The position numbers and the translations under genes are program-made. DNA of 63,515 bases, counting the filler, from Octopus bimaculoides (Eukaryota), in the NCBI RefSeq assembly GCF_001194135.2. It is 6 parts of 6 records of this genome, joined end to end, with 100 filler letters (N's around TTAATTAATTAA, not from the genome) between each part and the next. Parts side by side here need not be neighbours in the genome. Positions count along the whole stretch, not along the records: positions 25,816 to 50,259 come from NC_068994.1; 5 more parts are not named here. The stretch is one strand, 5' to 3'. The notes under the pieces are model-generated. The model was not told where the DNA came from and made no database searches. It worked only from the letters and a program-made list of their open reading frames with translations. This document shows, piece by piece, positions 7,200 to 50,259 of this stretch. Position 1 is the stretch's first letter. Each line of letters begins with the position of its first letter.

Positions 7200-7950
7200 T
7201 CTCTAGTTTCCATTGACCACAAGATAAGGAATTGAGGGACCCTGTCAAAGGCTTTCTCCATGTCAACAAAAACCAAGTACAGAGCTTTATCTTTGGCTAG
7301 GAATTTTTCCTGCAGCTATCTTACCAGAAATATATCATCAGTGGTGCTACTCCCTGGCACAAACCCAAACTGCATCTTATCTAAGCTGATTTTCTCCCTA
7401 ATTAGTTGGGCTATGACCCTCTCCGTGACTTTCATCACTTGATACAACAATTTGATACCTCTGTAATTATTTCTATCTAAGGTGTTACCTTCACCTTTGT
7501 AGCAGTTGACTATGGTACTGCTACACTAGTCATTGGGTATGACTCCTTTGTATATCACCTGGTTAACTATACAGGTGACTAGACTATAGCCTACTTTGGC
7601 AGGTGTTTTAAGTATCTCAGCAGTGGTTCCTGATGACCCGGAGGCTTTCCTTGTCTTGATATCCTAAATTGCTTTATCTACCAAGGAACTGTCAATTTGG
7701 ATAGGTGGTCCCTCTGTTGTGTCGACATTTGGCAGACTTTTTCCCATTTATTCTCTTCATTTAGCAACTTTTCATAGTGGCATCTCCAAGCCTCTCTCTT
7801 TGCAGCATCTTTGAATGCATGTGAGCCATCAATCCATGTGGACACATTTCTCTCCTATGACATCACAATTTTCTCCCCAAGTCTCTGTTCCTCATGACAC
7901 AGAACATTGACAAATCTCTTCTTATCTGCACCAACTCTGTATTGTTATTG
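7200..7950 (-). mobile_element. RTE-clade LINE RT fragment
   Basis: Minus strand reads MQFGFVPGSSTTDDIFLVR*LQEKFLAKDKALYLVFVDMEKAFDRV. Confidence 0.88.
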
Positions 7951-11100: not shown

Positions 11101-12136
11101 TGTTGTTGTTAGTAGTTGGTGGTTGTCTTATTATTTATTTGATTTTTGAATAAAAATAAGCTGTTGATATACAAAAGTTTCCATAGACATCTATACCATT
11201 GACAATTCTACCCTTTACTTCCCAACTATCCATCTTATCAATATAGTAATCACAATTACTCATCTTCTAATTTAACTATATACTAATGTATAACTGATTA
11301 TTTTCTCTCTGAATTGAGACTAAATCCATCATGTCCATGATAATTTGAAACCTTTGCAAATATTTGCTGTAGAAAAATTAAAAGTATATTACTATGTCTA
11401 TTGTTCAATAATGTACAATTCTATTTATTTAAGTGTTTTAATGGTAGTTATTAAGGTTAGCAAAAGGAATAATAGTTTATGTACAAGAAAACATGTATGC
11501 ATGTACAGAAATAAATGGAGAAATTGGTACCATCTATAATTCTATTTAAGCCATAATTTCATATCATTTAATGCAGGTCTCGTGTTGATAAATATCATGA
11601 TTTCATGTAAATAACGACCAGTTTGAATTAAACTCATTTCAAAATTTATGGAAAACAATTTCCCTTTTGACTATTCTTTTACAAAGGAAGGTTATAGTTT
11701 TAATCATTATATTTATATTTAAGTGGTAACAACTTGATATTTTTCTCACTCTATACATTCTTTTATCCATTCTAGCATTTGTTAAATGACACTTTAAATT
11801 TAGATTTAGAATTAAATATTTTGAATGAATATTGTAATGGTTGGGTATCTTTCATAATAACAGCTACTCAAATGTAATTAGTAAGAGTAATTTTTCAGTC
11901 AGGTACAGTATGCATAAACAGTAGTATTCCTTAGCTTGAAGAAATGTTAAATGATTTGGATCTGTTGTTATGTATAAAAAAATAATTATGTTTCTCATTA
12001 CTACTATTTCTATTAGTCTAAAATAGTGATTACCGCAAATATTATTTACCTTAACAGATGCGCATTAAAATCATGAAGTGAATGTGTTGACGATTGTCTT
12101 CTTGTTTCTCACTTGTATGAGTTTTATTTATTTATC

Positions 12137-25871: not shown

Positions 25872-26025
25872 AAATACTGTCAACCTGTTGTGGTGACATC
25901 AAGTGATGATGCTGTGGAAGATAATGCTGCTATGGTTTGTAACTATACATCAGATACAATGTCATCTAAGAGAAGTGGTAGACAAGGAGACCTGAAACAT
26001 TATGAAGAAATACCAGGAGTATCAG
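25872..26025 (+). CDS. PCDH: Protocadherin A, penultimate (cytoplasmic) exon; upstream exons absent from this scaffold
   Basis: caacag|AAATAC...GTATCAG|gttagt; 154 nt, phase 0 to 1; KYCQPVVVTSSDDAVED...KHYEEIPGVS is clearly paralogous to 36803-36947. Confidence 0.85.
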
Positions 26026-26179
26026 GTTAGTAACTTTAATGTCTATATTTTACTTTGTCATTTCAAATGTAACGGCCATTTCTAACATCGTTATCAACAC
26101 TGTTTGACAAGCTGTCTTTCATTTGTTGCTTCTCTGAATTACAAGATAAATCTGTGCTCAAATACATACACACATATAT

Positions 26180-28430
26180 CATCATCATCATCATCATCAT
26201 TATTTAATGTCTGTTGTCCATACTGGTATGGGTTGGACTGTTAGACAAGGGCTGGTAGGCTGAGGGGCTACACCAGATCACAGTTTGATTTGGCATGGTT
26301 TCTACGGTTGGATGACATTCCTAACACCAAGCACTCCGAGAGTGTAATGAGTGCTTTCACATGCCACTGGCACAGACGCCATTTGCATGAGACCAGTATC
26401 TTCCGTGAGTATAATTTCACTTGGCTTGATCAGTCATCTTCTCAATCTTGGTATATTACCAAAGGTCTTGATCGTTTGTCATTGCCTCCATGAGGCCCAA
26501 CACACAAAAGGTGCTTTTTACCTTCTGCCAGTATTGGCCACATTACCTTTGTGAGGCCCAATGCTCAAAAGGTGCTTTTTATGTGCCAATGGCAAGGGTG
26601 CCAATTACATGACACCAGCATCAACCACAGCTACGATCTCGCTTGACTTGATGGGTTTTCTAAAGCACAGTATATTGCCAAAGGTCTCAGTTATTAGTCA
26701 TTGCCTCCGTGAGACCCAAAGTTCGAAGATCATGCTTCACCACCTCATCCCATGTCTTCCTGGGTCTACCTCTACCACAGATTCTCTCCACAGTTAGAGA
26801 TTGGTGCTTCTTTACACAGCTATCTACATCCATAGGCATCATATGACGATACCAGCACAGTTAATTCTCTTGCACACCACATCTGATGTCTCTTATGCCC
26901 AACTTTTCTCTCAAGCTGTTTAAACACTGTTGTACATGCACACTGATATTGCACATCCAGTGAAGCATGCTAGCTTTATTTCTTTCAAGCCTATGCATGT
27001 CCTTGGCTATTATAGCCCATGTTTCACTGCCGTGTAGCATAGCTGTTTACACAGACTTCATACAGTCTCTCTGAGGGAGTGGCCCTTTGTTGCCAGCAGA
27101 AGTAAGAGCTCTCTGAACTTTGCCCAGCCTATTTATTCTCACAGCTACGCTTTCAGAGCATCCACCCCCACCACTAACTTGGTCACCAAGATAATGGAAG
27201 CTATCTACTACCTCTAGCTTACCTCACTGGCAGTCGATGGAGTCTATTTTCTGTACATTTTTAGTGTTAATTATACCTATGCACCTTCCACACACAAAAA
27301 CTATTTTCCCAGTTAACCTTCCTCTGATATTGCTGTGCCTCTTATGTGTCCATAGCTTGCACCGGATACATCTTATGGAGTTTATCCCAACACTTTACCT
27401 ACAGATCCAGCAGGGCCATCTGCCTAACAGAATTTGTGATTTGTCCGCCCTCCTAATTACTAAGATTTTGGTTTTTGCTATGTTAACTCTAAGGCCCTTC
27501 GATTCTAGACCTTGCTTCCATACCTGAAACTTTTTCTCTAGTTCTGGCAGTGATTCAGCTATAAGAACAAGGTCATCTTTTCCAGATTGGTCTGCTTCCT
27601 GGTATCTTTCTAGCCTGAAGTCTAAAGTCACTAATGACTATTCTATGCTGGAAGGTACTTTCTTCACCCAGGAAGGTCTTTGTATTTTTGAGCAACCATG
27701 CATCCCACTGTCTGACGAGAATGTAATCGATCTGGCTAGTATAGCCACCTGATTGGTAGGTTGTCAGGTGGCTAGCTGGCTTCTTGATGTTGTGTTGCAA
27801 TTCAATAGGTTATTTGCATCACAGAACTCCAGTAGCCTTGTCCCCTCTTCATTTCAGGAATCAATTCCATGTACACCATGGAAGATATCAGGTGCCTGAC
27901 ATACCCATTGATATCCCTAGCTTGCAGAAGAATATCATAAAAGCAGTCCTTTTGTTCATTTGGTAGACCCACTTGGCGGGGTGTAGGCAGAGATAATTGT
28001 TGCTTTGCTATTCTGCAAAACTAGCCTGAGCTTAAGCACCCTATTGCACACTCTGACTACCTCTATGACCTTATGCACCCATTTCTCTGCAAGAAGTATG
28101 CCCACACCACCTACCTGATCGCTCTTACCTTCCCAGAAGATTTTATACTTACATATCTTGCTTGTGAGGAACCTGGCTGAAGCTCCTCTCCACCTTACTT
28201 TTCGAATGCAACATACATCAACACACCTTCATTCAAGCATCTGTATATTTGTGACAGACTATGCCTTTCTTTTGCTGGGCTTAAATCTCATTTGTGGACC
28301 CATGAAAGACGAACCTCCATTAACTACTCTGCCTATCTATCTGTGCATACCTGTCAACGCTTTGTATGCCATAAGGTCTGAAAATGTAACAGAGGCCTCA
28401 AAAGATATTTTAAGATCCACAAAGATCAGA
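26180..28430 (-). mobile_element. Rearranged RTE LINE (endonuclease, internal deletion, RT C-terminus, 3' tail) in Pcdh A intron
   Basis: Minus strand: KPASHLTTYQSGGYTSQIDYILVRQ (APE), DDLVLIAESLPELEKKFQVWKQGLESKGLRVNIAKTK (RT), GRGRPRKTWDEVV, then family tail. Confidence 0.88.
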
Positions 28431-28904
28431 ACTTAACTGCAGCTCTTGGTGGTCCAAAACAGATATGAAATTTAAGTGATTGTCTTTTCAAAACATTGTC
28501 TTGTTTAAAAAGTCACATCAGATGCCATGATAGATCTAAGGTGTAAGTACAAGAGGTGATCAATCTGTGTATAAGGAGCAGACTGTACCCTAAGTATCGA
28601 ATTTCTTTTTGCTGTGTTAGTATGAATCAGTTATAATTAACAGAAGCAGATTTTCTAAAGCCAGCTGCTCTAACTGTCAACAAATATCTATATTCACTGT
28701 TTCCAAGAAGTAATATTTCTCCTAGTCTTTTGAACATGAACACCACCACTTCTATGACAGTAACATTTGTTTACAACTATCATGTGATACCAATACAAAT
28801 GAGACACAAACATGTTCACACATGCACACATGTATTCTTATATAGATACATATATATATATCATCATATATATATCATACATATATATATATCATCATCA
28901 TCAT

Positions 28905-30250
28905 ACATCATCATACATCTGTTTTTTCATGTTGGAATGGGTTGGATAGTTTGACAGGAGCTGGCAACCTAGAGGGCTGCACCAGGCCCCAGTTGTCTGT
29001 TTTGGCATGATTTCTGTCTTGATGCCCTTCCTAATGCCAACCACTTTACAGAGGGTATTGAGTGCATTCACATGACGCTGGCATGAGTGCTTTTTACATA
29101 GTGCCAGTACCCATGGGGTCACCAAGTGGTTTGAAAGACAAAGACGTCTCTGCTAAGAGAGGGAGAGGAACTGAAAGAAGTGATGTATGCCAGATGAGAG
29201 ACTGAAGTATGATAGAGGGTCAGGGATAGCTGTCTTCCTGCAGAGGAGATATTTGTCTACCCCAGTAGAACTAGAAAGTAGAGGGAGGTGAGAGAGAGAG
29301 AGCCTCCACACAGGAAACATAAGTAGTGTACAGGGGGGAAAAAAAGGCACAGAAGGGATAGAGGAGATATTTAGAAATAGCATGTGATGTTGAGAAGAAA
29401 CTGGAGGGGCCTGCAGTGAGGATTGTGGGGAGATGGTTGTTGATGCGTTTTGCCAGAGGACAGAGTTGTGTGTATATGGATTTACTAAGCTTGATGTGTC
29501 TTCTCAAGCACAGCAAATTGCTAAACATGTCACTCCCTTATCATCTTCTCATTGAGGTTCAGTATCTGAAGATCCTTTCTCACCATTTCATCTCATGTCT
29601 CCTTGGGTTAACCCCTTCCATAGGTTCCCTCCACAATTACAGATCAGCACTTCTTTATGCAACTGTCCTCATCCATATGCATCACATGACCATACCAGCA
29701 CAGTCCTCCATCTTGCACACTACATCAGATCAAATTTTTCTCTTAAATCATTAACACTCTGTTGTACATGCGCACTGACATCACCCATCTTGTGGAGCAT
29801 GCTGGCTTCATTTCTTTGAAGCCTTTGCATATTCTCTGTCATCACAGTCCATGTTTCACTGCCATGCAGCATAGCTGTTCTTACACAGGTGTCATTGTTT
29901 ACCTTTCACTCTGAGAGAAAGGCCGTTTGTTGCTAACAAAGGTAGCAGCTCCCTGAATTTTGCCCAGCCCATTGTCATTCTAGTAACTTCACTTTCAAAG
30001 CTTCCTCCTCTTCTGATAATTTGGTCACCTAGGTAACAGAGACTATCTACTGTTTCTAAGGATATCTCCCAGACATTTGAGAGAATTTATTTTCTATATA
30101 TTCCTAATGTTTATTGTACCTGCACATCTGCCATACACAATGACTTCTTTCTCTGTTAACTTTCCTTTGATACAGCTGCACTTCTTATGTGTTCATAGCT
30201 TAGACTTGGCACATTGTATGGAGTTTCTACCTGCACCTTTTCTATGTATT
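28905..30250 (-). mobile_element. RTE LINE 3' portion
   Basis: 29570-30250 parallels 26800-27400 (RT C-terminal region); tail motif GATGCCCTTCCTAATGCCAACCAC at ~29020. Confidence 0.75.
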
Positions 30251-30344
30251 GAGTAGGGGCCATCTCCCTGAAGGGACCAGTGATTTATCTGTATTCCTAT
30301 TTACTAAATGTGTGTGTATCAGGCTTCTTACAGTGTCTCTTCTC

Positions 30345-30440
30345 CAAATCCACTCACTGGGCTTTCTTTGGCCTAGGGACATAGCAGAAGACATGTGCCC
30401 AAGGTGCTGGCTGTGGAATCAGTCCCACAACCATGTGGCT
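30345..30440 (-). mobile_element. tRNA-derived SINE fragment (second family)
   Basis: GAAGACATGTGCCCAAGGTGCT...CCATGTGGCTG. Confidence 0.6.
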
Positions 30441-30625
30441 GAAAAGCAAACTTCTTAAGTATATAAAGTGTCAGGGTGTAAGAATTAGATTTTGTTTATA
30501 TTCTAGATTCTTGGAAATCTAAGAACTGAATATTCAGTCATATCTCTGTCATGTTCATGCAAATTTTACAAAGAAATTATTTTTTTCAATTACTTTGTGA
30601 AATATTTTTTTTGTAGCTAAATAGG

Positions 30626-30729
30626 AGAGACGAAAATAGTGGAGACGAAAATAGTGGAGACGAAAATAGTAGAGACGAAAATAGTGGAGACGAAAATAGT
30701 AGAGACGAAAATAGTAGAGACGAAAATAG
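30626..30729. repeat. 15-bp minisatellite (RGAGACGAAAATAGT) x7
   Basis: Direct count of seven near-perfect units. Confidence 0.95.
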
Positions 30730-30985
30730 ATGTATATTTAGTAAAGTTGGGTCCTTTCCTTCATTGCTACTCTGAATACCAATGACAGGTTCAGCTTCAA
30801 ATTAATATAAACTGTACCCTAAATATTGAGGTCTTTTTTGACCCATTTGTCCATCATTTTATTAGAAATACCTTTGCTCTACATTGTGGAGTGCATTTCT
30901 TTTTAATATTGCTTACTTAATAAGTAACAAAATGGTCATCAACATCATAATTTTGTAAAACATGTATTTTGTTTCTAAATTTCAG

Positions 30986-31062
30986 ATCAAAATATTTATA
31001 AAAACAATGATACAGCTACATCAAAAGATTCTAGTGAAGAAACACCAGTGAAACACGTATAA
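30986..31062 (+). CDS. PCDH: Protocadherin A, terminal coding exon
   Basis: tttcag|AT CAA AAT...CAC GTA TAA; phase 1 fits the preceding exon; DQNIYKNNDTATSKDSSEETPVKHV* parallels GNDTYKN...YPKHV* of gene B. Confidence 0.8.
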
Positions 31063-31823
31063 TTAAACTGCTACTGAAGTGACATAACTATTTTTCTCAA
31101 TATAAATATACAATATCACTATACAATACACAAACAACATTAACATACACTTTGTTTATTAATTCCGCTATATCCGTATATTCTGCAGAAACATGTCTAT
31201 AAATGAGCCACAATGTTAATTTAATTACTAAAGATTACATTGTATTGATCAATAAATTATTATTAAATATATTCAATTTGGAACATTTCAAATATATTGT
31301 ATATGTTCACCATTAACATTCCAATTACTTGAAAAATTTACTCCATATTGTATAGATAATGCCAGGAATAGAGATCTGAAAATAATTTCTCATGACTAAA
31401 AAAAAAACATTTTAGTGAAAATTACAGCAGTATTTTCTGAGATTTAAGAAGAAATGTATTTAAAATCTTATCTAGCTATCAATATTACCAATATTAAGGG
31501 ATGAATGTCACACCTTCTCCCAACAAATCAATAGTAAAGGAGCAACATCATTGGTCTTCTGTTTAGGTCATTCAACCAATCAGATTCTCTCTAAAACATG
31601 GAAAGAAACCACTAAGAAAGCTAAGCATTCACATTACTGGTGTTACTAAACTAAACAGTTATGTTTAAATGTAGAATATTCTAGCTATATAAATACATAT
31701 CTATATATATATATAATGTCGTTAGTAACATTAGACAAACTTCATCTTTAAGGACAAATACATACAAACATAGTAGTGCAGTAACAACACATGCAACCCT
31801 ATCCTAGCAGCAGGCTATCTGCC

Positions 31824-31953
31824 TGACGTGCTACACTACTCCATCACCATACAGCCATTGTCACACCATTGCAGCAGCAATTACAATGGATCTTTCTACA
31901 ACAATACATCTTTCTATTCTCACTGAATAACCAATGATATAATTATTGAAGAG
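31824..31953 (+). promoter_or_regulatory. Putative promoter/non-coding leader exon of Pcdh B
   Basis: TGACGTG-N7-ACTCCATCA..TACAGCCATTGTCACAC...ACAATGGA block repeated once per Pcdh unit, ending at donor GAG|GTAGGT; gene B has an acceptor (tttttag|34209) 53 nt before its ATG. Confidence 0.6.
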
Positions 31954-34261
31954 GTAGGTTTCTATTTAATCTTTCACTATCTCATTTTAATTTTAAGACC
32001 TCACTGAATCTGTAAATGATTGAATAATTATTCACATATTTTTCAGTCATATTGTCTGTATTGATAGTTCTTTTTGTTTTTGTTTTTTGTCCTCCTCTCC
32101 CTTCACAATTAGATGATGTTGCATGAAACATTTAATATTTAGAGTTAAAATTGTTTCAGGAAAACAATTTGAAAATAAAGGAGTGAAAATAGTAGTAAAA
32201 TAAAACAAAACAGTAAATTTTTTCTTTATATTTTTAATTTGAGGTAGAAAGTAAGAGTGTAAATCATTGTTTTGTTTTACTAGGCTTCTCTGTCTACTCT
32301 TATTTCTGATTTTCATTCCATTGGTTTTACAAACAATCTTTATCTCACAGTGCTTTCATTTAAGCTATTCTCCTACTCAGCTGACGTTGCTCTGGTTAAT
32401 TCAGCTGAAAATGAGTTCCAGCAGAAGCTGTGGGTTAGTCTTGCATGAGATTAGCATCTGGTCAGGAATCATGTACTCTCAGTTACTTAAACACTGTGAT
32501 AATCTCCAACCTAATTACTCTGTAGACCTGGGAGAGGGAGAGAGATTTAATTTAACTTTAATTCTAATATTTATACTTTTTTCAATTGAATCCAAACTGT
32601 CTGTTTCTATAATATTTGTTACACAAATGTAGACTACTGTTACTTATCCATTATAAGTGTTGCTTTTGGTGTATGGAAAATGTAATATTTTGTCTGTATC
32701 ATTAGATTGCATTTGAAAGATATGTTATGGATAAAATATGAAGAAATATACCAGATTGTGTTTAAGTGTAATAATAGTGTGTTGGTTGTTGGTAATGATG
32801 AGGCACTGGTGTGTTAGAGTTCTGGGTTGAAGATAATGGTGGACAGTTTAATATTCACCACTGTCAGGAAGTGAATAGTAATGAGTGTCTTCAACAGATT
32901 TAATATAAACTGAAGAATCTGTCCTGTTGGATTAAATTTGTAATATATCTTTTTGTTATTGTTCAGGATAGATTATAAATGAATTAATCTGGAGAGAATT
33001 TGAACAGTAATTTCTATAATTATTTGAACAGTTTGATGTCGTTTTATTCATGATGGAATTGCATTCATCATATTAACTGGGAAAGAATGAATACATCATT
33101 GCAATGTTACAATCATATGTATGAACTTTTAAAATGTATAGGCATATGTTTAACATGCACTTCAGCCTTTTCATGAAAAAAGGTTAGCATGTCTTTAGAA
33201 ATTACCCAAATACTTGGTTAATGTCACAGAAATTTCTTATTACTTCTTTTTGACAATCTAAAATCAAGTTATTGTGAAAGCAAAAGATCTAAAATCAGTG
33301 TTATTGGAAACAATTTCAAAATCCTTTAACAGATTTTAAACATCCATTTTTTTTTATTCCCAGAATCATTTACATCTTGCAGATCAATTAAAGATGAGCA
33401 GCAATGAAGTTTTGACATCAAAGGGATGGATGTTTGATGTCATAATTTGTTAGCTCCATTATATCTTGCTTAAGATATTTTGTCAAGTTTAGTAAAAATA
33501 TGGCTGGTTACAATTAGTTTGTACAAATATTATATTTTTATTTTTGTCACTGCCATAATGGCTTCAAAAAAAATGGGTGACTAATAAAAGTGAAAGGTAC
33601 TATATGTTATTTCTTTTCAAAATTAACCATTAAATTAACAAACTTGATTTCGTTTGGTTAAGTTTTCTTGCTAAGTGTGGGTGGGACACACAGCACTTCT
33701 AGAACTCAGTTTCGCTGTGAGTGAGTCTTCTCAAGAACTCCATATCGCCAGACATCTCAGTCCATGGTCATTTCCTCCGTGAGGCCCAACTTCCTGAGAT
33801 CAGTCCTTACCACTTCATCCCATGTCTTCCTGGGTCTCCCTCTTCCATTAAAAAGAAATCACACATGAGATAATGTGATCATGGTTATAATCATAGCTCC
33901 ATCTAGGTTGACAGCAACATGCAATTATAGACTAAAATCAGGTCCTAATTTTTGCATAAAATTCAGATGTAAAAGATTATAATTAACTGTAGTGTGGAAA
34001 TCATTATTTTTTTTTTTAGTTGGAAACTGATTACAGCTTTGGTTTTTACTACATTGGTACTTATAAAAGATATACTGTAAAATACCAAGGGTGATTTATT
34101 TGATTCAGAGAGTAAAAAAGGATTTAGAGCTAAAAAAGAAATCTTTGTATATTGATACCAATTATATTTTTATTAACTAATTTTATAAATTATTATATCT
34201 GTTTTTAGGTTCAATGCACCACATAGCTACACACACTTAACCAAGACCAACTTAAAACAAT

Positions 34262-36610
34262 ATGTTCCTGTCATTGTCTATTATATTATCAATGGTCCAC
34301 TGCATCCTGACCATAGACCTTACCTACCATGTGGAAGAAGAGAGAAGTCCAGGAACATATGTAGCAGACATTGCTGCTGATTCTAAACTTTTAGACAATG
34401 TTAAACCATCTGACCAACAATTGATAACATTCAGTCAATTCAAACGAAAGGTGGCACAGTTATTTAATATCACCAAAACAGGTAAACTGTACACTGCTCA
34501 GACACTGGATGCAGAAGATCTCTGTACATTCAACAAAGAATGTTCTAGAACTATGAAAGTTGTTGTCAATAAAGGAACAAGTGTTTCGAAAATATTAAAA
34601 ATCAAAATAGTAATAGAAGACATCAATGACCATCACCCTGAGTTTCCCAAAAAACAAATTTCATTAAAGTTCTCAGAAACAGATGGAAAAGGCACAAAAC
34701 GATCACTACCAAATGCCATGGACAAAGATGTAGGATTTGAAAACTCATTAATACAATATAAATTAAAATCAAAGAATGGAGAACCATTCTCTCTGTCAGT
34801 GTCTAAAAGAGCTGATGGTATTTCTTCTCTTAAAATAGTTTTGAAAGAATCATTGGACAGAGAAATCAAAGACACATATTTATTACAAGTCATAGCTAAG
34901 GATGGAGGTTCACCAGCAAAACAAGGTGTTTTAAATATAAATATTTCTATAGCAGATGACAATGACAACCCACCTGTATTTTCTAAACCTCTCTATAATA
35001 TATCCATACAAAGTACACATCACAAATCTAAACCCATCATTGTTTTGTCTGTAACAGATGCTGATGCTGGTGAAAATGGTAAAATTACTTTCCATTTCAG
35101 TCCCAAGACATCAGATCTAGCTAAAAGCTATTTTCTATTGAATGAAACCAGTGGAAGCATTTTATTAAGGGAATATTCAAATTTAGGGAAAAAGAAAACT
35201 TATGAATTGTTTATAGAGGCCAGAGATGGGGGCAACCCTCCCCTCAGTTCCATAGCAACAGTCCTCGTAAATGTTATCAACCAACACAACAATCCTCCAT
35301 CTATTGATATTGATTATGTTTCTGCAATCAATGACAACACAGCTACCATTTCTGAAGACATCAAAGTTGGTAGTTTCATTGCTTATGTGATGGTCACCGA
35401 CAACGATGTGGGACAAAATGGAGAGGTCAGCTGTGATATCAAACATGATACATTCAAACTACAGTCAATGGGATCTAAAGAATATAAAATCGTTCTAAAC
35501 AAACCAGTGGNNNNNNNNNNNNNNNNNNNNNNNNNNNNNNNNNNNNNNNNNNNNNNNNNNNNNNNNNNNNNNNNNNNNNNNNNNNNNNNNNNNNNNNNNN
35601 NNNNNNNNNNNNNNNNNNNNNNNNNNNNNNNNNNNNNNNNNNNNNNNNNNNNNNNNNNNNNNNNNNNNNNNNNNNNNNNNNNNNNNNNNNNNNNNNNNNN
35701 NNNNNNNNNNNNNNNNNNNNNNNNNNNNNNNNNNNNNNNNNNNNNNNNNNNNNNNNNNNNNNNNNNNNNNNNNNNNNNNNNNNNNNNNNNNNNNNNNNNN
35801 NNNNNNNNNNNNNNNNNNNNNNNNNNNNNNNNNNNNNNNNNNNNNNNNNNNNNNNNNNNNNNNNNNNNNNNNNNNNNNNNNNNNNNNNNNNNNNNNNNNN
35901 NNNNNNNNNNNNNNNNNNNNNNNNNNNNNNNNNNNNNNNNNNNNNNNNNNNNNNNNNNNNNNNNNNNNNNNNNNNNNNNNNNNNNNNNNNNNNNNNNNNN
36001 NNNNNNNNNNNNNNNNNNNNNNNNNNNNNNNNNNNNNNNNNNNNNNNNNNNNNNNNNNNNNNNNNNNNNNNNNNNNNNNNNNNNNNNNNNNNNNNNNNNN
36101 NNNNNNNNNNNNNNNNNNNNNNNNNNNNNNNNNNNNNNNNNNNNNNNNNNNNNNNNNNNNNNNNNNNNNNNNNNNNNNNNNNNNNNNNCAACAACTAGTG
36201 TCACTTTGGTATTGGCTGTTAGTAACGAGACATCACCAATGTCGAAGAGTGGACCTTTACAATCTTCGGGTAGGGTCCATATGACATGGGTTATTATCAT
36301 TGTATCCTCAGCAGTAATAATATCAGTGGCTATTGTTGTTTCTATAACACTGTGTATTATGAAATGCATTAAACACAGAGATAACACAGCAGCTGCTGCA
36401 ACAAAGACTACAGCATACCAAGGTAGAGCAGAGATGAAACAATTGTTGTACCAGACTAACACTTCTGTTGCTATGTCAAGGAATCCGGAAGAGATGGTGA
36501 AAAGGAATATCTATTCTGAGAGATCCAAGAGTGAATGTTATGCAGAAGGTCAGCTACGGAACAAATATGAATCTTCAGTTCAAAGCAGAACCCTTCCTAA
36601 ACCATCTTCA
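34262..36610 (+). CDS. PCDH: Protocadherin B, large exon (signal peptide, EC1-EC6, TM, proximal tail); 35511-36188 is an N-gap
   Basis: Cadherin motifs EDINDHHPEF, LDRE, AKDGG, DDNDNPPVF, DNDVGQNG; TM WVIIIVSSAVIISVAIVVSITLCIM; donor TCA|GTAAGA at 36611. The 678-N gap fits the missing EC4 end, EC5 and most of EC6. Confidence 0.95.
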
Positions 36611-36802
36611 GTAAGATTTCAATTTTTAATAATCATTAAATTTATTTAAACATTATTCCTTTTAAATCCCTTTTTGCCCTCATGCATTTCATATTCATTA
36701 ATTTAATGCTATGTAAGGATAATTGTTCTGTTAACCAAAAATTTAATTTTTCTTTAATTTTGATTGTGTTAAAACTAATTTTTTTCTTCTTTTTGTAAAC
36801 AG

Positions 36803-36947
36803 AAATACAGTGAACCAGTTGTGGTAACATCAAATGATGATGCTGTGGAAGATACCACATCTGTTGTGTCGAACTATCCAACTAACACCTTGTCGAGTCA
36901 GAGTAGCAGTCGTACTAAGCATTATGAAGAGATACCGGTAACCTCAG
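36803..36947 (+). CDS. PCDH: Protocadherin B, penultimate exon
   Basis: taaacag|AAATAC...CCTCAG|gtagga; 145 nt, phase 0 to 1; KYSEPVVVTSNDDAVED...KHYEEIPVTS. Confidence 0.85.
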
Positions 36948-37069
36948 GTAGGAAAGAAATCCCCAGTTTTGAAATTGAATTGAATTTAAGCAATTAAGCA
37001 AAATAAGCATGTATTAATGTATAGCTGTTCATAATTCATCATAAAAATGATGTATTCTAAATGAAAACA

Positions 37070-37690: not shown

Positions 37691-37765
37691 TAAAAATATT
37701 CAAACTTCATTTTGCAATGAATTTTTATGTTTTTTATTTGTTTTCTTTTTTTTTTTTTTTTTCAG

Positions 37766-37845
37766 GAAATGATACATATAAAAACAGTATAACATCAACA
37801 CTAAACAGAAATCAGAATCAAGAGACCTACCCTAAACACGTGTGA
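37766..37845 (+). CDS. PCDH: Protocadherin B, terminal coding exon
   Basis: (T)n cag|GA AAT GAT...CAC GTG TGA; phase 1; GNDTYKNSITSTLNRNQNQETYPKHV*. Confidence 0.82.
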
Positions 37846-38931: not shown

Positions 38932-39061
38932 TGATCCACCACTTCATCAACTTTACAACCATTGTCACACTACAACAGCTACAATTACAATGGATTTTCT
39001 TACTGCAGCGGATGTTAAGTCTTTGGATTTTACAACAATGGATTTTACAATTATTGTCAAT
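38932..39061 (+). promoter_or_regulatory. Leader-exon paralog of pseudogene C (degenerate)
   Basis: ACTTCATCA..TACAACCATTGTCACAC...ACAATGGA; donor AAT|GTAAGT. Confidence 0.5.
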
Positions 39062-39201
39062 GTAAGTCTAGTTAAAATATCTTATAAAAATGTTTTTATT
39101 GCATTGTTTGGTTTATATAAAGTGTATAGTTACATGCATTTTGTAACATTGTACACAAACTTTTGCATAAATGTACAAAACTAAGAGCTTTGCCAAATGT
39201 A

Positions 39202-40489: not shown

Positions 40490-41980
40490 ACCACTCATCT
40501 ATTCCTAGCTTCCACATTGACCATCAGATAAGGTGGTGAGAGACTCTGTCAAAGGCTGTCTCCATGTCGACAAAAGCCAGGTACAGAGGATTATTTTTGG
40601 CTAAATATTTCTCCTGTAGTTGCCTACCCAGGAATATAGTTGTGCTCTTGCCTGGCACAAATCCAAACTACATCACATTTACACTAACCCTCTTCCTAAT
40701 TAATTGAGCTATGACCTTTTCTGTGACTTTCATCACCTGATCCAACAATGTGATGCTTCTGTAATTATTTGTGCCTAAGGCATCACCTTTGCCTTTGTAG
40801 CAGTTGACTATAATGCTGATACAATAAGCGTTGCACATGACTCCCTCGTGGATAACCTGATTAACTATACAGGTGACTAGGCTGTATCCTACTCTGCTAG
40901 ATATTTCAATCATCTCAGCAGTGATTCCTGATGGGCCAGGGGCTTTCACTGTTTTCATATCCTTAATTGCTTTATCTACCAAGCTATTGTTGATTTGGAT
41001 AGCTGGTCCCCCAGTTGGGTCAACATTTGGCAGACTCTCCTTTTCCCGTTCATTTTCCATGTTTAGCAGCCTTTCATAATAGTATTTCCAAGTCTCTTTC
41101 TTTGCAGAATCATTAAATGCAAATGCACCATCATCTATGCAAATACATTTCTCTCCTACCACATTACGATTTTCTCTCACATACTTCAAGTCTCTGGTTC
41201 TCACTTCGCAGAAGATGGGCTAATTTCTTTTCTACTTTTCCCTTGGCTAGATATACCAGTCTCCTAGCTTCCCTTCTGGCTATCTTATACAATTTTCTGC
41301 TACCTCCACACTACTACTCCTTCCAGGCCTGTTTCTTTGCTCTGGAGGCTTTGTCTACAATATTATTTCTCCACCACATCACCCTAGGTCTGGTTGGGAC
41401 TTTGCACCAGCTACAGATTTGGTCTTTGGCACTCAGCAAGCTGTCCCACAGGATTTCCCAGTTACCCCCTATGGTACAAGTCTGTAGTTCCTCCTCCCTC
41501 TCATCAAATTTCTAAATTAGAGTCTCCCTAAATCTCTGACCATATAAAGGATCCTTAAGCTTCCAAATCCTTCTTTTCTAGATTGGTCTGCTTCTTGGTA
41601 TCCTTCTGGCTTGAAGATTAAAGTCACTAATGACTTTTTCATGCTGGTGGGTACATTCTTCACCAGGGAAGGTCTTTGCATTTATGAGCAACCATGTATC
41701 TCGCTGTCTGGTGAGAATGTAATCAATCTGGCTAGTATGGTCACTCAGTTAATAGGTTGTCAAGTGGCTGGCAGGCTTCCTGTAGTTGGTGTTGCAGATC
41801 AATAAGTTATTTGCATCACAGAGCCTTGTTCTCTCTTCATTTTGGGAACCAATTCCATGGCCCCCATGTACACCATGGAAGATACCTGGCTGCCGCCCAA
41901 TATGCCCATTGAAATCCCCAGCCATGAAGATGAGATCATTGTCATTCATCTTTGAGGTAGCTTGCAGAAGAATACCATAA
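40490..41980 (-). mobile_element. RTE LINE endonuclease/RT fragment
   Basis: IFMAGDFNGHIG, NTNYRKPASHLTTY, YKGKGDALGTNNYRSITLLDQVMKV, FVDMETAFDRV. Confidence 0.9.
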
Positions 41981-42139
41981 AAGTAGTCCTTTTGTTCATT
42001 TGGTAGATCTGCTTGGTGGTGGGGTGGGGCTAGGCAAACACCAGTGTTACATACAGTGAGTCATGGGCACAGAGTGCAGAGATGAGAGAAGAATGAAGTG
42101 CATATGCTCCATTAGTCATGCAATGTCAGTGTGTGTGTG

Positions 42140-43539: not shown

Positions 43540-44561
43540 ATTCTTTAATGAATATCATTATGGTTCTTATTGAACAAATAACTTTCAGGGATTGATATGG
43601 TGAAGGAATAAATCTTCCATTCCAGTATATACAGATGTAGGACTGAGGAAGTCTTTAAATGAATCTCATTTAGCATGATCAGATATAATCTGTTGCGGAG
43701 TGGAAATTAGAGAAAGTCCTTGAAAATAGTTAAAGTAAAATTTCTACTGAAGTTAGAACATCTGTACCAAAATAAAATGTGTTAAACATGAAAATTAGAA
43801 TTGAAGGCATGAATGACAATTAGCCTCCCTTACACAAAATATTTATAGTGCATCACTGGAAGGAACAGACCACAAGATGAAACCATTTATTACATTGATA
43901 GCATCTGGCTCAGATGCATGAGAAAACAGCAAAATAACATTATATTGCAAATCCTAAAACATCATATATAAAACCAAAATACTTTAAATTAAATGAAAAA
44001 AATTGAGTATTCATAAACAGATATCAATGTGTGGCTGAAAATGAAATGTGAATTATATGTGAAGCCAGAGTTGAAAGCAATACTCTCTTTGTAGGCATTG
44101 TTCTAGTTCATATAATGAATGAAGAAAACAGTCCTCTAACTATTGATATAGACTTTGTTCCTAATCCAAATAATGACATAACTACTATTTCTGAAGATAT
44201 CAAAGTCGGTAGTTTCATTGCTTATGTGATGGTCACTGACAATGATGTGGGACAAAATGGAGAGGTCAGCTGTGATATCAAACATGACACATTCAAACTA
44301 CAGTCAATGAGATCAAAAAATATAAAATAGTTCTTTAAAAAAGCAGTGGAAATGATAAACAGTTGTTTAGTATGAACTCTCACAGTGGTGTTTTATCATT
44401 CTCCAGACAAGTTTATCTAAATGATGCTGGAAGTTATGAGCTGGTGTTTGTTGTGAAAGACAGTGGTAGTCCAGTTCAGTCGTCAACAACTAGTGTCACT
44501 TTGGTATTGGCTGTTAGTAACGAGACATCACCAATGTCGAAGAGTGGACCTTTACAATCTT
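43540..44561 (+). pseudogene. PCDH: Protocadherin C pseudogene, remnants of the large exon (EC2-EC4 fused to the EC6 end)
   Basis: Frameshifted NVLNMKIRIEGMNDN*, KPFITLIASGSDA*ENSKIT; then TISEDIKVGSFIAYVMVTDNDVGQNG and VKDSGSPVQSSTTSVTLVLAVSNETSPMSKSGPLQS nearly identical to gene B; EC1, EC5 and TM missing. Start is approximate. Confidence 0.9.
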
Positions 44562-45334: not shown

Positions 45335-46703
45335 TTATCTAACACTAACCAATATTTTCCCTCACTCCTGAATTTTTCTTTCAATCTTTCAACATCAAAT
45401 ATAACCTTAGCAAAAGGAAATAATAACTAACTATCTATTGTTATCATTTACATTTATTGCTGTCATATCTCAGCAGTGTATTTAAAATGTGACTTTTACA
45501 TCGAACTACAGACTGCAAATGTTTAATCCTTCAGTTCCTATCCAAGCTGTTTAGAAAGAGTTTTAGCTAAGTATATGGATCCATCCTTATTTGCTCAACG
45601 ATATACTTATTTTTTGTATTATCTTAATAAGTTTCCAAATTATCAATAAAATCTGAAATATGTTAAGCATATCTTCTCTTTAAAAATAATAATATATTTC
45701 AAGAGAACATTTTTCTACAAAATATTGTAATTATGAAGAAGTGAATTTGTTACTTCTTTTCAAATAAACACTTCTATGAAGTTACATAGACCCTTATTTA
45801 AAGGTAGACTTATCCAAATTGAGTAAGATATCTAGTGAAAGGAACACATAAAAAGAAAAATAGACTTTATTTTTGTAAAATTTCATGAGTGAATATTTAC
45901 ATATTCATTATTTTCATTAATGGAATTGCCTGAAATAATGCAAGTTTTTTTTTTTTTTTGGCTATTTTGGAATGTTGTAATAGTTAAAGTTTTAACTATT
46001 TCATAACAAGCATTTATAAATTGAAGTTCAATGATTTTTTAATATTTAATTTCTTTTTCTAGAAAATTTGTTCTGATCATTGTTCAATTTAAGAATTTAA
46101 TGTTTTACCAAATAATAAGGAAATAACAGAATTATTAAATTAAAGGTTGTGCATATTTTTATGATGATGTAGATCAGCCATCGAAAACAGACATTAATCA
46201 AATCAAACTTTACATATCACTCCTTCGTTGTTTACAAGATGAAGCATGTTAATTTGACTGAAATCAGAATTTCTCTCCCTTTTTTGCGTAGCTTTAAAAA
46301 AAAATAAAAATAAACATTGATTTACCAAAAAATTTTAAAGAATTTTGTCAATTTAAAAATATTCATTAAGATTATAAATCCTGCTTTTACTTTTTTTCCC
46401 CTAATTTGTAAATAAATTTCAGTTTAAATTAATCTAATTAATATACTGATGCGGTATTTTACCTGATATTCACTAAAGCTATCAAGCCAATTAGTCGTAC
46501 TCAGCAGATGTATCAATTTTTTTGTTTGTTTTTGTTTGAAATCTGAAATAAATATTCAGCAGATGAGTGAAACTAACAATATATCCCGATGATGGGAAAA
46601 CTCATTCAAGCATATCCATCTCAAATCTCTAAATGCATGCTTACATTTGCTCACGTACACATATTGACAATAGAGGCACTGGCATAAACGTAAGTGTTCC
46701 TAC

Positions 46704-46866
46704 TGACTCACAGTTCCACTCCATCAATATACAGCCATTGTCAAACACACACACACACATGCACACACACACACACACACACAGCTGCAGCTTCAATGGA
46801 CCTTTTCTGCTCTAACAAAATTGATGACTCTTGTTACACTGAGTAATAATGGAATTAAAGATTAAG
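46704..46866 (+). promoter_or_regulatory. Putative promoter/non-coding leader exon of Pcdh D
   Basis: TGACTCA-N7-ACTCCATCA..TACAGCCATTGTCA..(CA)n..CAATGGA; donor AAG|GTAAGA; gene D acceptor (gttgcag|49343) lies 54 nt before its ATG. Confidence 0.6.
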
Positions 46867-48082
46867 GTAAGATTAAAATTTATTTTTGTTTGTTGTGTTT
46901 GTTATTTCTTTGTTGTTGTTTTAACATATTCTATTGAAATAGATCTCTTTATATAATGAAAGCTGAAAGGGAAACAGTGATCAGTAGACATATTTTTCTT
47001 CTTTAGACACATTGTTAACTGGTTGGTAGTAGTGAAACCAGAAATGTTGTTTGAGATTTAGCATTGAAAATTTCCACAACCACCCAAACTAATCCTTCTT
47101 ATAGATGAAAAACAAATAATGCTATTAAATTTCTACAGATGTTTATTATATCTACTAAATTATGTCAGTTTGGTATAAAAATTAGTTCATTCATATTGAA
47201 TATGGTATAGAATTAATGGAAGAATTATGTATAATTGGAATTGATAAATGCTGAAACTGTATGCTAAATAAGGACAAATGGAGCTGAAGCTTTGAGCTTC
47301 TAAGGAGACTTAACAACAGTCACAAGAGAAATCTATCAGCTCATTATAAGTGTTTGTTAAATCTAGTAAAGAATGACAGAATCTTAAGCAATCTTCATCA
47401 TCATCATCATCATCATATGATTAATTTAAAAAGAATTTCCTTGATTTGGCAAACAACGTTTAATATAATTCTGAACATTTAATGTGTGTATGTGTGTCTC
47501 ACTGTTACTAAAACAAAACACAAAAACATAAAAGGGTTAATAATAATCATGATATATAAATTAACCAGATTATTGAGTATTTATTTAGTGAAATTAAAAA
47601 TGAATATAAAATTAGTAATACCTCATGATAATCTTTCTGTTCCAATTTAATTAGGTATATTAGTTTGGATATCCATTTAAATTACTGCTGCTTTTTCTAG
47701 TAATATTTTCAGTATAGAATTATGTTACTTATTGTTTTCACTACAATCTTTCCCCTTAGATATTTCTTACTGTCTCACCTTAAATCTTTCTTATAACTCA
47801 GTCAATTTTTATGAATTTCTTTGATTATTATTTTCTTTTCCTGTTAATTTTATTTTAATTAAATGATACATAACAACCAAATCTTCCTCAAACCATATCC
47901 TCCCATCTTAAAAATAAGAACAAGAAAATGTTATCCTTAGTCTGCTAAAGAATACCATTTTCCTTTTTTTTTTTCAAGTTTGGGATTTGACCCATCTACC
48001 ATGACTGCAGAGAAAACCTTTGTGGTCAAGAAAATAAATTATTATTATTATTATTATTATTATCATTATTATTAGTAGTAGT

Positions 48083-48565: not shown

Positions 48566-49396
48566 TTAATCTCAGAATGAGTATGTAAAGGGATGTAACT
48601 AAATACCACAAAGTGTGTGTGTGTACGTGTCCTGCACACTTATAATGTTGCCTTTGACTACCAACCCTTAATCCTTCATAATAATGATTTCTTATATTTG
48701 CACAAGACCTCAGATTTGCGGAGTAGGTACAGCTGATTTATTTTATTATCCATGGAAAGATGAAAGACATAGTAGACTTTGAAATCAAGGCATAAAAGGA
48801 ATTTTAACTAAATAGACTCTTTATCAACTCTAACAATCCACTTTGATAATGATGCAAGAGCATGTTTTATATTTATGTATGGGAGGAAGATTCAGTCTCC
48901 AAAATATTTTCCTGTTTTCTCTTGGTTTGACATTTTTTTTTTATCAGTGCATCATTGTTGTTTTGCTTTAAGCTGCTCTACTGGTTAATAATAGAAGAAA
49001 CCATGATTGAGGCATTTATTACATTAAGATGAGATCACAGTCAAGCCAACACTATATTTACTGAAGCATTACAACTTATTGTTTAATTCCTAATAAATGT
49101 AAGCATTGTATATCTATTGTGAAAATTATGACATGTACACACACACACAGAGTTTCCAATTTACAATATATTTCTCTATTCATGTTTTATCAGAATGTAT
49201 TATCAAAAACTAAAGAATTGTATAAATCTTAAGAAGGTGATTCCTCATTTATTATGATGTAATACCATCATAAATAAGAAATCACCTCCTTCATAACACT
49301 TTCAAGTTAATGTTTTGACAGATGTTCTTTCTATTGTTGCAGGTTAGATTCTAAGTACTCAGATGATCGTAAAGTGTTTCAAAACCAAAGAGAATT

Positions 49397-50259
49397 ATGT
49401 GGTTCCCACCATGGATCATCTTCTCACTGTTTCATACATGTCTTAGTATAGACCTCACTTATCATATAGAGGAAGAGAGAAGTCCAGGAACATATGTAGC
49501 AGACATTGCTGCTGATTCTAAACTGTTAGACAATATCAAATCAGCTGAACAGCAAATGGTAACATTCAGTCAACTCAAAAGAAAAGTAACACAATATTTC
49601 AATGTGACCAAAACAGGAAAACTTTACACTTCTCAGAAACTTGATGCTGAATCACTTTGTACATACAACAAAGAATGTTCTAGGATTATTAAAATTGTTG
49701 TTCGGAAAACAAAGTCATTTACAAAAATATTGAAAATCAAAATTGTAATAAAAGATATAAATGATCATGCACCAGAATTTCCTGAAAAACAAATAATTTT
49801 ACAGTTTGGGGAAGGAGATCGAGAAGGTATGAAAAAGTCAGTTCCAAATGCCATAGACAAGGATATCAGTTACCAAAATTCTTTCATTGAATATAAACTT
49901 AAAAAGTCTGATGATTCATTTTCCCTGTCAGTTTCTAAAAGAGCTGATGGTATTTCATCATTAAAGATTGTTTTAAAAGATAAATTAGACCGAGAGATAA
50001 AAGATAAATATAATTTAGAAGTTATTGCTAAAGATGGAGGTTCTCCATCTAAACAGAGTGTGTTAAATGTTGTGATTGTTGTTGAAGATGAGAATGATAA
50101 TCCACCTGTATTTTCAAAACCACTCTATAATATTTCCATCAGAACCACACACGACAAGACAAAACCTATTCTTACTTTGTCAGTAACCGACAAAGATATT
50201 GGATCCAACAGTAAAATTACTTTCCATTTCAGCCCCAAAACTTCCAGCCAAGCAAAGGG
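49397..50259 (+). CDS. PCDH: Protocadherin D, 5' part of the large exon (signal peptide, EC1, EC2, start of EC3), cut by scaffold end
   Basis: Open frame with DLTYHIEEERSPGTYVADIAADS, KDINDHAPEF, LDRE, EDENDNPPVF; collinear with gene B. Confidence 0.93.

Follow-up and report, generated by a model that had tools for sequence, protein, structure and literature searches.

Each protocadherin (Pcdh) gene unit in a stretch of Octopus bimaculoides DNA is preceded by a conserved block that closes with a splice donor. The stretch as a whole, hereafter the window, comprises 63,515 nucleotides, and the piece considered here (positions 25816-50259) carries its gene units on the plus strand. A block of this kind, about 160-190 bases long, stands ahead of the sampled genes in three octopod species: one precedes every sampled Pcdh unit of O. 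bimaculoides and O. vulgaris, and a weaker form is found in Argonauta. Taken as a whole, the explanation that we regard as probable is a non-coding leader exon combined with a promoter that would be shared by the family. Genes B and D of the window are protocadherins (Pfam Cadherin, Cadherin_2), and unit C is considered a pseudogene since only Pcdh fragments survive in it (43950-44560, matching residues 280-417 and 598-678 of a full-length protocadherin).

The window contains three alignable same-strand (plus) blocks of about 130-160 nt, each ending in a splice donor. A sequence-only reading of this DNA had placed the blocks at the coordinates given below, with these donors, and sequence and alignment confirm that placement on the plus strand. 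The features of the blocks and of their putative exons are the following.

31790-31823, plus strand: 5' flank of block B (ACACATGCAACCCTATCCTAGCAGCAGGCTATCTGCC), conserved among orthologs, 91% identical to four of four O. vulgaris copies
31824-31953, plus strand: block B, its 3' part being the predicted non-coding exon 1 of gene B (nhmmer E = 3e-30; exon end 31953)
31824-31830, plus strand: half-site TGACGTG of unit B, resembling the cAMP response element (CRE) bound by bZIP factors, identical in four of four O. vulgaris copies of locus L009
31838-31878, plus strand: family-wide core of block B, ACTCCATCA..ACAGCCATTGTCACAC..GCAGCAGC, from the alignment of copies
31886-31930, plus strand: upstream open reading frame (uORF) of unit B, 14 codons (MDLSTTIHLSILTE, then stop), in the strong start context ACAATGG
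31954-34208, plus strand: predicted intron 1 of gene B, donor GTAGGT at 31954, acceptor TTTTTAG
34209-34261, plus strand: part of exon 2 of gene B within the 5' untranslated region (5'UTR), 53 nt, AG at 34207-34208 and ATG at 34262
38932-39061, plus strand: block C, leader of the pseudogene unit (nhmmer E = 1e-24; core 38959-38970; donor GTAAGT at 39062)
46704-46866, plus strand: block D (nhmmer E = 1e-25; core 46735-46746; exon end 46866; donor GTAAGA at 46867)
49343-49396, plus strand: 5'UTR part of exon 2 of gene D, 54 nt, AG at 49341-49342 and ATG at 49397

A 12-mer within the core, CCATTGTCAMAC, occurs three times in the window, on the plus strand and only at 31855, 38959 and 46735, for an expectation of 0.01 by shuffling (none of 100 shuffles gave three). 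TTGT and CA are invariant in the 13 aligned copies, and TGTCA stands at +4 in 10 of 10 representatives. From 5' to 3', the family layout comprises a bZIP site, (A/T)(C/T)(C/T)CATCA, the near-invariant (C)CATTGTCA(C/A)AC, A/T AGCAGCAG, a variable stretch, GGATT(T/A)(T/A)ACA about 10 nt ahead of the donor, and finally AG^GTAAGT, the caret marking the exon boundary. The distance from core to donor is 98-100 nt in five of seven representatives; it is longer in unit D because a 30-nt (CA)n microsatellite is inserted at ~46744-46783, between TTGTCA and CAGCTGCAG. CA-rich runs also immediately precede the core in the copies of the Obi2 group and in contigs L001 and L003, and the spot seems prone to microsatellite growth.

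Cephalopod Pcdh loci retrieved via their proteins, 238 kb in all, were scanned with a profile of the block. They include a second O. bimaculoides array on CM046614.1 (L002, L013), O. vulgaris arrays on OX597827.1 (L005 and L009, the latter containing close relatives of gene B), and loci from Argonauta hians (L010), a cuttlefish (L011) and what is probably an octopod assembly (L004). The search returned 17 strong copies (E 1e-18 to 1e-32), nine from O. bimaculoides and eight from O. vulgaris, distributed as three in the window, six in L002/L013, four in L005 and four in L009. All 17 are located upstream of a Pcdh coding exon and on its strand, with another Pcdh coding exon on their far side, at a genomic distance of 1736-5582 nt from donor to ATG, and no off-pattern copy was found on either strand of the 238 kb. 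Where the orientation of the array flips in L013, the blocks flip together with the minus-strand genes, and one copy on the minus strand, at first sight without a gene, does precede the N-terminus of a minus-strand Pcdh that an assembly gap truncates. At 11124-11421 of the same locus, plus- and minus-strand protocadherins meet at a run of N, as two converging sub-arrays, which may be a scaffolding join in the chromosome assembly. In Argonauta, each of the three complete intergenic intervals contains one GGATTAAACAATG(A/C)AG^GTAA(G/T)T, with a weaker core. Thus a motif search upstream of Pcdh paralogs bears out the per-gene, paralog-conserved non-coding element that the sequence-only reading had proposed. 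Its wording "every protocadherin" holds for the sampled octopod units and does not extend to one cuttlefish Pcdh (L011) and one Pcdh of L004, since no block was detected within 10 kb upstream of either. Contig L012 carries a different leader.

That the 3' part of the block is an exon is supported by its donors, by the acceptors before the coding exons and by contigs from a relative. Every other genomic copy read is followed by GTAAGT or GTAGGT. For genes B and D, acceptors had been claimed 53-54 nt ahead of the start codon, and they are indeed there, exon 2 starting at 34209 and 49343; in both Octopus species TTTTAG^GTTCAA is positioned 53-55 nt ahead of the ATG, followed by a diverged UTR. 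A polypyrimidine tract and CAG^ATC are also present about 100 nt ahead of the ATG in the related genome L004. Five contigs assembled from public sequencing runs of a related octopod (L001, L003, L006, L007 and L008) encode protocadherins 48-55% identical to B and D. In all five, the homologous exon end (GGAATTTAACA..CAG or GGATTTAACA..CAG) is joined directly to sequence 13-70 nt before the ATG, and in the multiple alignment the contigs part from the genomic copies exactly at the donor column. Where genomic copies show AG^GTAAGT, the aligned junction of L003 is GCAG^ATCT, so its exon end is not an unspliced donor. In L001 the core is separated from the ATG by 158 nt, in agreement with the 99 + 53 nt that splicing of gene B should give. 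Read from their junctions, the five contigs are probably spliced cDNA, and the homologous donor would therefore be used. The claim of a leader exon is upheld by the conserved donor and acceptor and by these homologue contigs; such an exon, which we hold with high confidence, is supported in the homologues, and the window junctions 31953^34209 and 46866^49343 are predicted from it. The frames of some contigs are interrupted, namely those of the spliced-leader contigs L003 (732-1838; 368 residues, then a stop) and L006 (84-1154; 275 + 60 residues) and that of L012 (247-2114; 386 + 159 residues), which could reflect assembly errors, paralog chimeras or transcribed pseudogenes.

The block is more conserved than its surroundings. 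Block B is 92-93% identical to the four O. vulgaris L009 units, with sub-windows at 97-100%, and it evolves slower than silent sites, since the coding exon of gene B shows 93%, 96% and 84% identity to O. vulgaris at codon positions 1, 2 and 3, respectively. Directly upstream of the flank, positions 31666-31789 display only 38-51% identity. On the other side, the first ~60 nt of intron 1 of gene B align with O. vulgaris (61% in one copy, 80-82% in the other three), and the intron is unalignable past that point. Comparison of paralogs yields a sharper contrast: between Obi2a or Obi2b and Obi13, the core is 99-100% and the 3' end of the exon 90-95% identical, the first 600 nt of coding DNA are at 70-71%, and the intron is at random level. 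The near-perfectly identical stretch reaches about 90 nt upstream of the core in Obi2/Obi13 and about 65 nt in B/Ovu9. Between subfamilies, whose proteins are 50-60% identical, the core retains 69-79% identity (random pairs: mean 57%, maximum 65%), and the flanks do not exceed what is expected at random.

The 5' edge of the block, where paralog-wide similarity starts, is occupied by the bZIP site. Unit D possesses an exact AP-1 site, TGACTCA, at 46704-46710, and the TGACGTG of unit B aligns to the position of an exact TGACTCA in five other lineage representatives. With both sites taken as 7-mers, a 7-nt spacer separates them from ACTCCATCA. Unit C contains no bZIP site and reads TGATCCA at 38932-38938, followed by 2 nt and then by ACTTCATCA. 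These spacings agree with those reported from the sequence alone, in which the site of unit C had been called degenerate. The sequence and spacing stand, and decay is not needed to account for them: the loss need not follow from pseudogenization, because tx1 and tx3, homologues that seem to be expressed, lack the site too and have almost the spacing of unit C. An exact TGASTCA lies 30-35 nt ahead of the core in five of ten lineage representatives (background 0.01 per 160 nt), and TGACG lies at -31 or -32 in two further ones (background 0.06 per 160 nt). Exact TGACTCA is found in D, Obi2, Obi13, Ovu5a and Ovu5d, and TGACG(TG) in B and Ovu9.

We propose that each block constitutes the 5' end of the next Pcdh gene. 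A non-coding first exon would end at the strong donor, about 100 nt past the TTGTCA core, and the tightly conserved 35-90 nt at the upstream edge of the block would belong with it. This exon would be spliced over an intron of 1.7-5.6 kb to the acceptor located 53-54 nt ahead of the ATG. Transcription would begin in or just before the block, in which case the TGACTCA/TGACG site and the core would together make a compact shared promoter. Such a promoter would have been copied with each tandem duplication and then retained by selection, so that the whole family would answer to the same factors, presumably a bZIP factor and a binder of TTGTCACAC..AGCAGCAG. The promoter part, that is, a transcription start in or next to the block, is only somewhat better than an even bet. 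It is favoured because identity spans ~65-90 nt before the core, the size of a core promoter, and because sites of the AP-1-binding TPA response element (TRE) or CRE type are DNA-level signals and paralog similarity begins at the bZIP site. A start at the block edge would give a 5'UTR of about 155 nt. That this promoter responds to neuronal activity is a plausible suggestion from its motifs.

Several observations weigh against this explanation. The bZIP site is not universal, being absent from unit C, tx1 and tx3, and two Argonauta copies that were read contain no exact AP-1 site. The (CA)n run inside the core of unit D is a tolerated insertion, and the near-identity within an array could partly result from local gene conversion. 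The profile was built from the first copies found, and its specificity was assessed within the 238 kb. With respect to the exon, the cDNA nature of the five contigs is judged from their junctions. The 90% protein cluster of gene B has no member from a sequencing-run assembly, and gene D has no entry in the protein index, its best match being at 71%. The remaining points concern DNA further upstream, which in unit B contains the following module.

31531-31700, plus strand: upstream module of unit B (module 1), with ATTGG at 31550, CCAATCAG at 31576 and the TATA-like TATATAAATA at 31686, from alignment to O. vulgaris

With its CCAAT pair and TATA-like box 130-300 nt before the block, module 1 could be a distal promoter or an alternative transcription start. 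Its alignments to four of four O. vulgaris units show 76-81% identity, which is close to the value for third codon positions (84%) and therefore does not demonstrate constraint. A CCAAT box lies 219-279 nt ahead of the core in units C and D. Contigs L001 and L003 extend 230 and 585 nt upstream of the core, via a common CCAAT + ATTGG module, which indicates that some transcripts have a more distant start or come from read-through of the preceding gene. In the Obi2/Obi13 array, a second module, about 95% conserved, is located at -375 to -250 from the core (L002 ~7790-7915, with homologues in L002 and L013). Its sequence includes GCCATATTTTG and an inverted YY1-like motif, TTATGGC, and low-complexity CT/CA DNA parts it from the block.

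These upstream sequences are the starting point of another explanation, which we consider possible if doubtful: the block would lie wholly within the 5'UTR, with transcription starting 130-400 nt upstream, at the CCAAT/TATA module of unit B or the second module of Obi2. The block would then act in RNA, through uORFs, translational control or neuronal mRNA localisation, or as an element of the DNA past the transcription start. Besides the upstream extension of L001 and L003 and the conservation of the second module, this explanation is favoured by the right-hand edge of paralog conservation, which coincides with the exon end, and by the upstream ATG present in every leader. However, extension of a contig can arise by low-level read-through in same-strand arrays, module 1 is conserved no better than silent sites, and ortholog conservation reaches ~60 nt into the intron. 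A positionally fixed TRE/CRE at the 5' edge is also hard to account for in RNA.

Every leader has at least one upstream ATG, in the context ACAATGG in B, C and Ovu9 and TCAATGG in D, and many copies exhibit AACAATG at the exon end, but upstream ATGs in the leaders are not enriched over background. From copy to copy the uORFs vary in position, length and frame, and the upstream ATGs of other subfamilies occupy different places. The uORF peptide of unit B is not conserved, since a 1-nt indel between O. bimaculoides and O. vulgaris alters its C-terminus. A conserved peptide, suggested by the uORFs of B and D, which both begin with MDL and finish with TE, was rejected in view of this ortholog frameshift and of the absence of the ORF from other subfamilies. 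No conserved RNA structure emerged either: the consensus reaches -0.91 kcal/mol, and block B alone has z = -1.96. An inverted repeat, CCATTGT/ACAATGG, is present in B and C, and its second arm reads TCAATGG (6/7) in D; this arm is not conserved outside the B/C/D/Ovu9 subfamily. An RNA hairpin formed by the repeat was accordingly discarded as a family feature, being limited to that subfamily, with the RNAalifold consensus as above. A cluster of SOX sites was likewise rejected, as the core misfits strict WWCAAWG and counts are near background.

Returning to the leader exon with a shared promoter, the core could instead serve chromosome architecture. The block would then be a looping element, a functional counterpart of the conserved sequence element (CSE) and CTCF of vertebrates, and a zinc-finger protein on the TTGTCACAC..AGCAGCAG core would bring about enhancer contact and isoform choice. 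Each gene has one oriented copy, the ~45-nt core is extremely conserved, and the chromosome that carries the PCDH supercluster also bears C2H2 zinc-finger genes (PMC9068888). The core also has GTCACAC in common with Drosophila Motif 1, G(A/C)TACGGTCACACTG, which is bound by M1BP (PMC8263732), but this likeness is one 7-mer, of little statistical weight. Allowing up to three mismatches, the CTCF-like motif CCASYAGRKGGCRS has no match within or near any block. A CGCT box is absent from 31531-31960 and 46450-46875, and a single AGCG was found, in unit C. Stochastic choice is not known from cephalopods. Spiralian cohesin lacks functional data (PMC10658181). We regard an architectural role as unlikely.

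Still less probable is that the similarity is functionless, a remnant of recent tandem duplication and local gene conversion of the 5' exon. Copies within arrays are indeed near-identical (five in Obi2, four in Ovu9, three in Ovu5), and homogenisation by gene conversion has been proposed for these arrays (PMC9068888). Conversion would, however, have to skip an intron at random level and a coding exon at 70% and yet hold the block at 99-100%. Moreover, the core is kept across subfamilies with 50-60% protein identity, between Octopus species above the silent level, and partly in Argonauta. That the block is a dispersed repeat, a transposon fragment or the 3'UTR of the upstream gene, lying near Pcdh genes by chance, is very improbable: the region is rich in transposon fragments and the stop codon of gene A precedes block B by only 760 nt of intergenic space, but each of the 17 copies found in the 238 kb precedes a Pcdh coding exon in the orientation of that exon, the block is apparently spliced onto the downstream coding exon in homologues, Rfam returned no match for the piece, and two polyadenylation signals (AATAAA at 31251, ATTAAA at 31262) occur ~190-200 nt past the gene A stop and 560 nt ahead of block B, so two of the three objections foreseen in the sequence-only reading, a dispersed repeat and an upstream 3'UTR, look unlikely.

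The neighbouring genes were delineated as follows. The last coding exon of gene A, upstream of block B, is given here.

30986-31062, plus strand: last coding exon of upstream gene A, ..DQNIYKNNDTATSKDSSEETPVKHV then stop, 26 residues, stop codon 31060-31062

Its peptide is 80-88% identical in four of four O. vulgaris units (L009), and the DNA differences include silent ones (ACA/ACT, GTG/GTC, CAC/CAT). The apparent stop of the gene A ORF at 26028 is in fact a splice donor, CAG^GTTAGT, which leads to this real last exon. The finding of a terminal coding exon implies that these protocadherins have at least four exons: leader, large, short cytoplasmic and terminal. It is plausible but not proven that the 3'UTR of gene A is short and finishes ahead of block B. 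The last intron of gene A, about 5 kb long, contains reverse-transcriptase/transposon fragments (window 26025-31062) and, at 30604-30744, a minisatellite with a 15-nt unit (GGAGACGAAAATAGT) in ~9 copies. Repeated retrotransposon fragments are located at 26647-27133, 29490-29973, 27576-27979 and 41572-42019; their minus-strand ORFs, such as MLHGSETW.., resemble the end of a reverse transcriptase. Two of these copies are 2.84 kb apart in the last intron of gene A, and another lies in unit C.

The ORF of gene B starts with the ATG at 34262, and its N-terminal 416 residues are 99% identical to O. bimaculoides XP_014781377.1, "protocadherin alpha-3-like". An assembly gap (35511-36188) interrupts its coding sequence. 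The listed end of this ORF, 36649, is not the true one, since homology resumes at 36781-36949 (repeats D10, D18); the terminal exon, ..NDTYKNSITSTLNRNQNQETYPKHV then stop, lies at ~37765-37845, 1.09 kb ahead of block C. Right after the gap, 78 nt (36189-36266) recur at 100% identity in pseudogene C (44484-44561), owing perhaps to misassembly at the edge of the gap or to very recent gene conversion. Gene D (ATG 49397) runs off the end of the piece. A candidate terminal exon of pseudogene C within the gene D intron (repeat D19) was dismissed as low-complexity chance, being devoid of coding similarity. A bacterial promoter/terminator scan was disregarded, as the host is eukaryotic.

How cephalopods regulate their very large Pcdh arrays is an open question, for which the block provides a concrete starting sequence: it is short, sharply bounded and common to the sampled octopod members, with a recognisable bZIP site and an invariant core. 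It can serve as a profile for annotating pseudogenes and genuine 5' ends, as a bait for the binding factor, or as a target for reporter or CRISPR assays; a preprint reports a transgenic cephalopod (bioRxiv 10.64898/2026.09.23.753964). Were the block an ordinary 5'UTR, it would still be unusually conserved and helpful for gene models. A 2023 review calls the clusters "still-enigmatic" and points to the absence of functional cohesin data for spiralians (PMC10658181). No description of the block was found in the literature searched, which did not cover Albertin 2015 or Wang & Ragsdale 2017.

Leader exons usually diverge fast. The octopod block resembles an ordinary non-coding first exon in its consensus donor, its acceptor shortly before the ATG, its lack of a conserved frame and the probable splice junction in homologue contigs. 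It differs in being 99-100% identical between paralogs with 70% coding DNA, and above the silent-site level between species. Compared with the AP-1 (TRE)/CRE promoters of activity-regulated neuronal genes, the block shares a TGACTCA or half-CRE TGACG at a fixed 5' position in seven of ten lineages, whereas some homologues that seem to be expressed lack the site and the B type is only a half-CRE. Environmental enrichment is reported to raise the expression of three O. vulgaris protocadherins (PMC7465212), which would be compatible with such a promoter, although this is circumstantial. Drosophila Motif 1 is a core-promoter motif near start sites, bound by the zinc-finger protein M1BP with insulator-protein partners (PMC8263732). 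The octopod core TTGTCACAC and the motif GGTCACACTG have GTCACAC in common, but this is only a 7-mer in a different phylum, and several octopod copies read GTCAAAC, GTCACCC or GTAACAC; the resemblance may serve as a lead and is not a claim of membership.

The block had also been put forward as a candidate analogue of the vertebrate CSE, the promoter CTCF site of each variable exon of the clustered protocadherins (PMC7811963). The part of that comparison which stands is one oriented, conserved element before each Pcdh of a tandem array, far better conserved among paralogs than the surrounding non-coding DNA. The CGCT box, a CTCF-like motif and a fixed genomic distance do not accompany it. The distance from element to ATG is nearly constant (~150 nt; ~99 + 53) only in the mature mRNA, as the genomic distance to the start codon varies among octopods, in contrast to the vertebrate element. 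Unlike the CSE, the octopod element would for the most part be transcribed as a non-coding exon and is followed by an intron of 1.7-5.6 kb before the ATG. Cephalopods also lack the vertebrate scheme of variable and constant exons, octopod genes being complete duplicates that have no constant exons in common (PMC9068888). A homologous relationship to the CSE is excluded, and the block would be at most a functional analogue. One speculative extension, to which we give little credence, is that octopods evolved their own shared Pcdh promoter element independently of vertebrates: a TRE/CRE and a Motif-1-like TTGTCACAC..AGCAGCAG core would open a common leader exon and be read by a lineage-specific zinc-finger or architectural protein, choosing among ~170 genes per neuron. 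If so, it would represent a convergent counterpart of the CSE/CTCF choice system of vertebrates.

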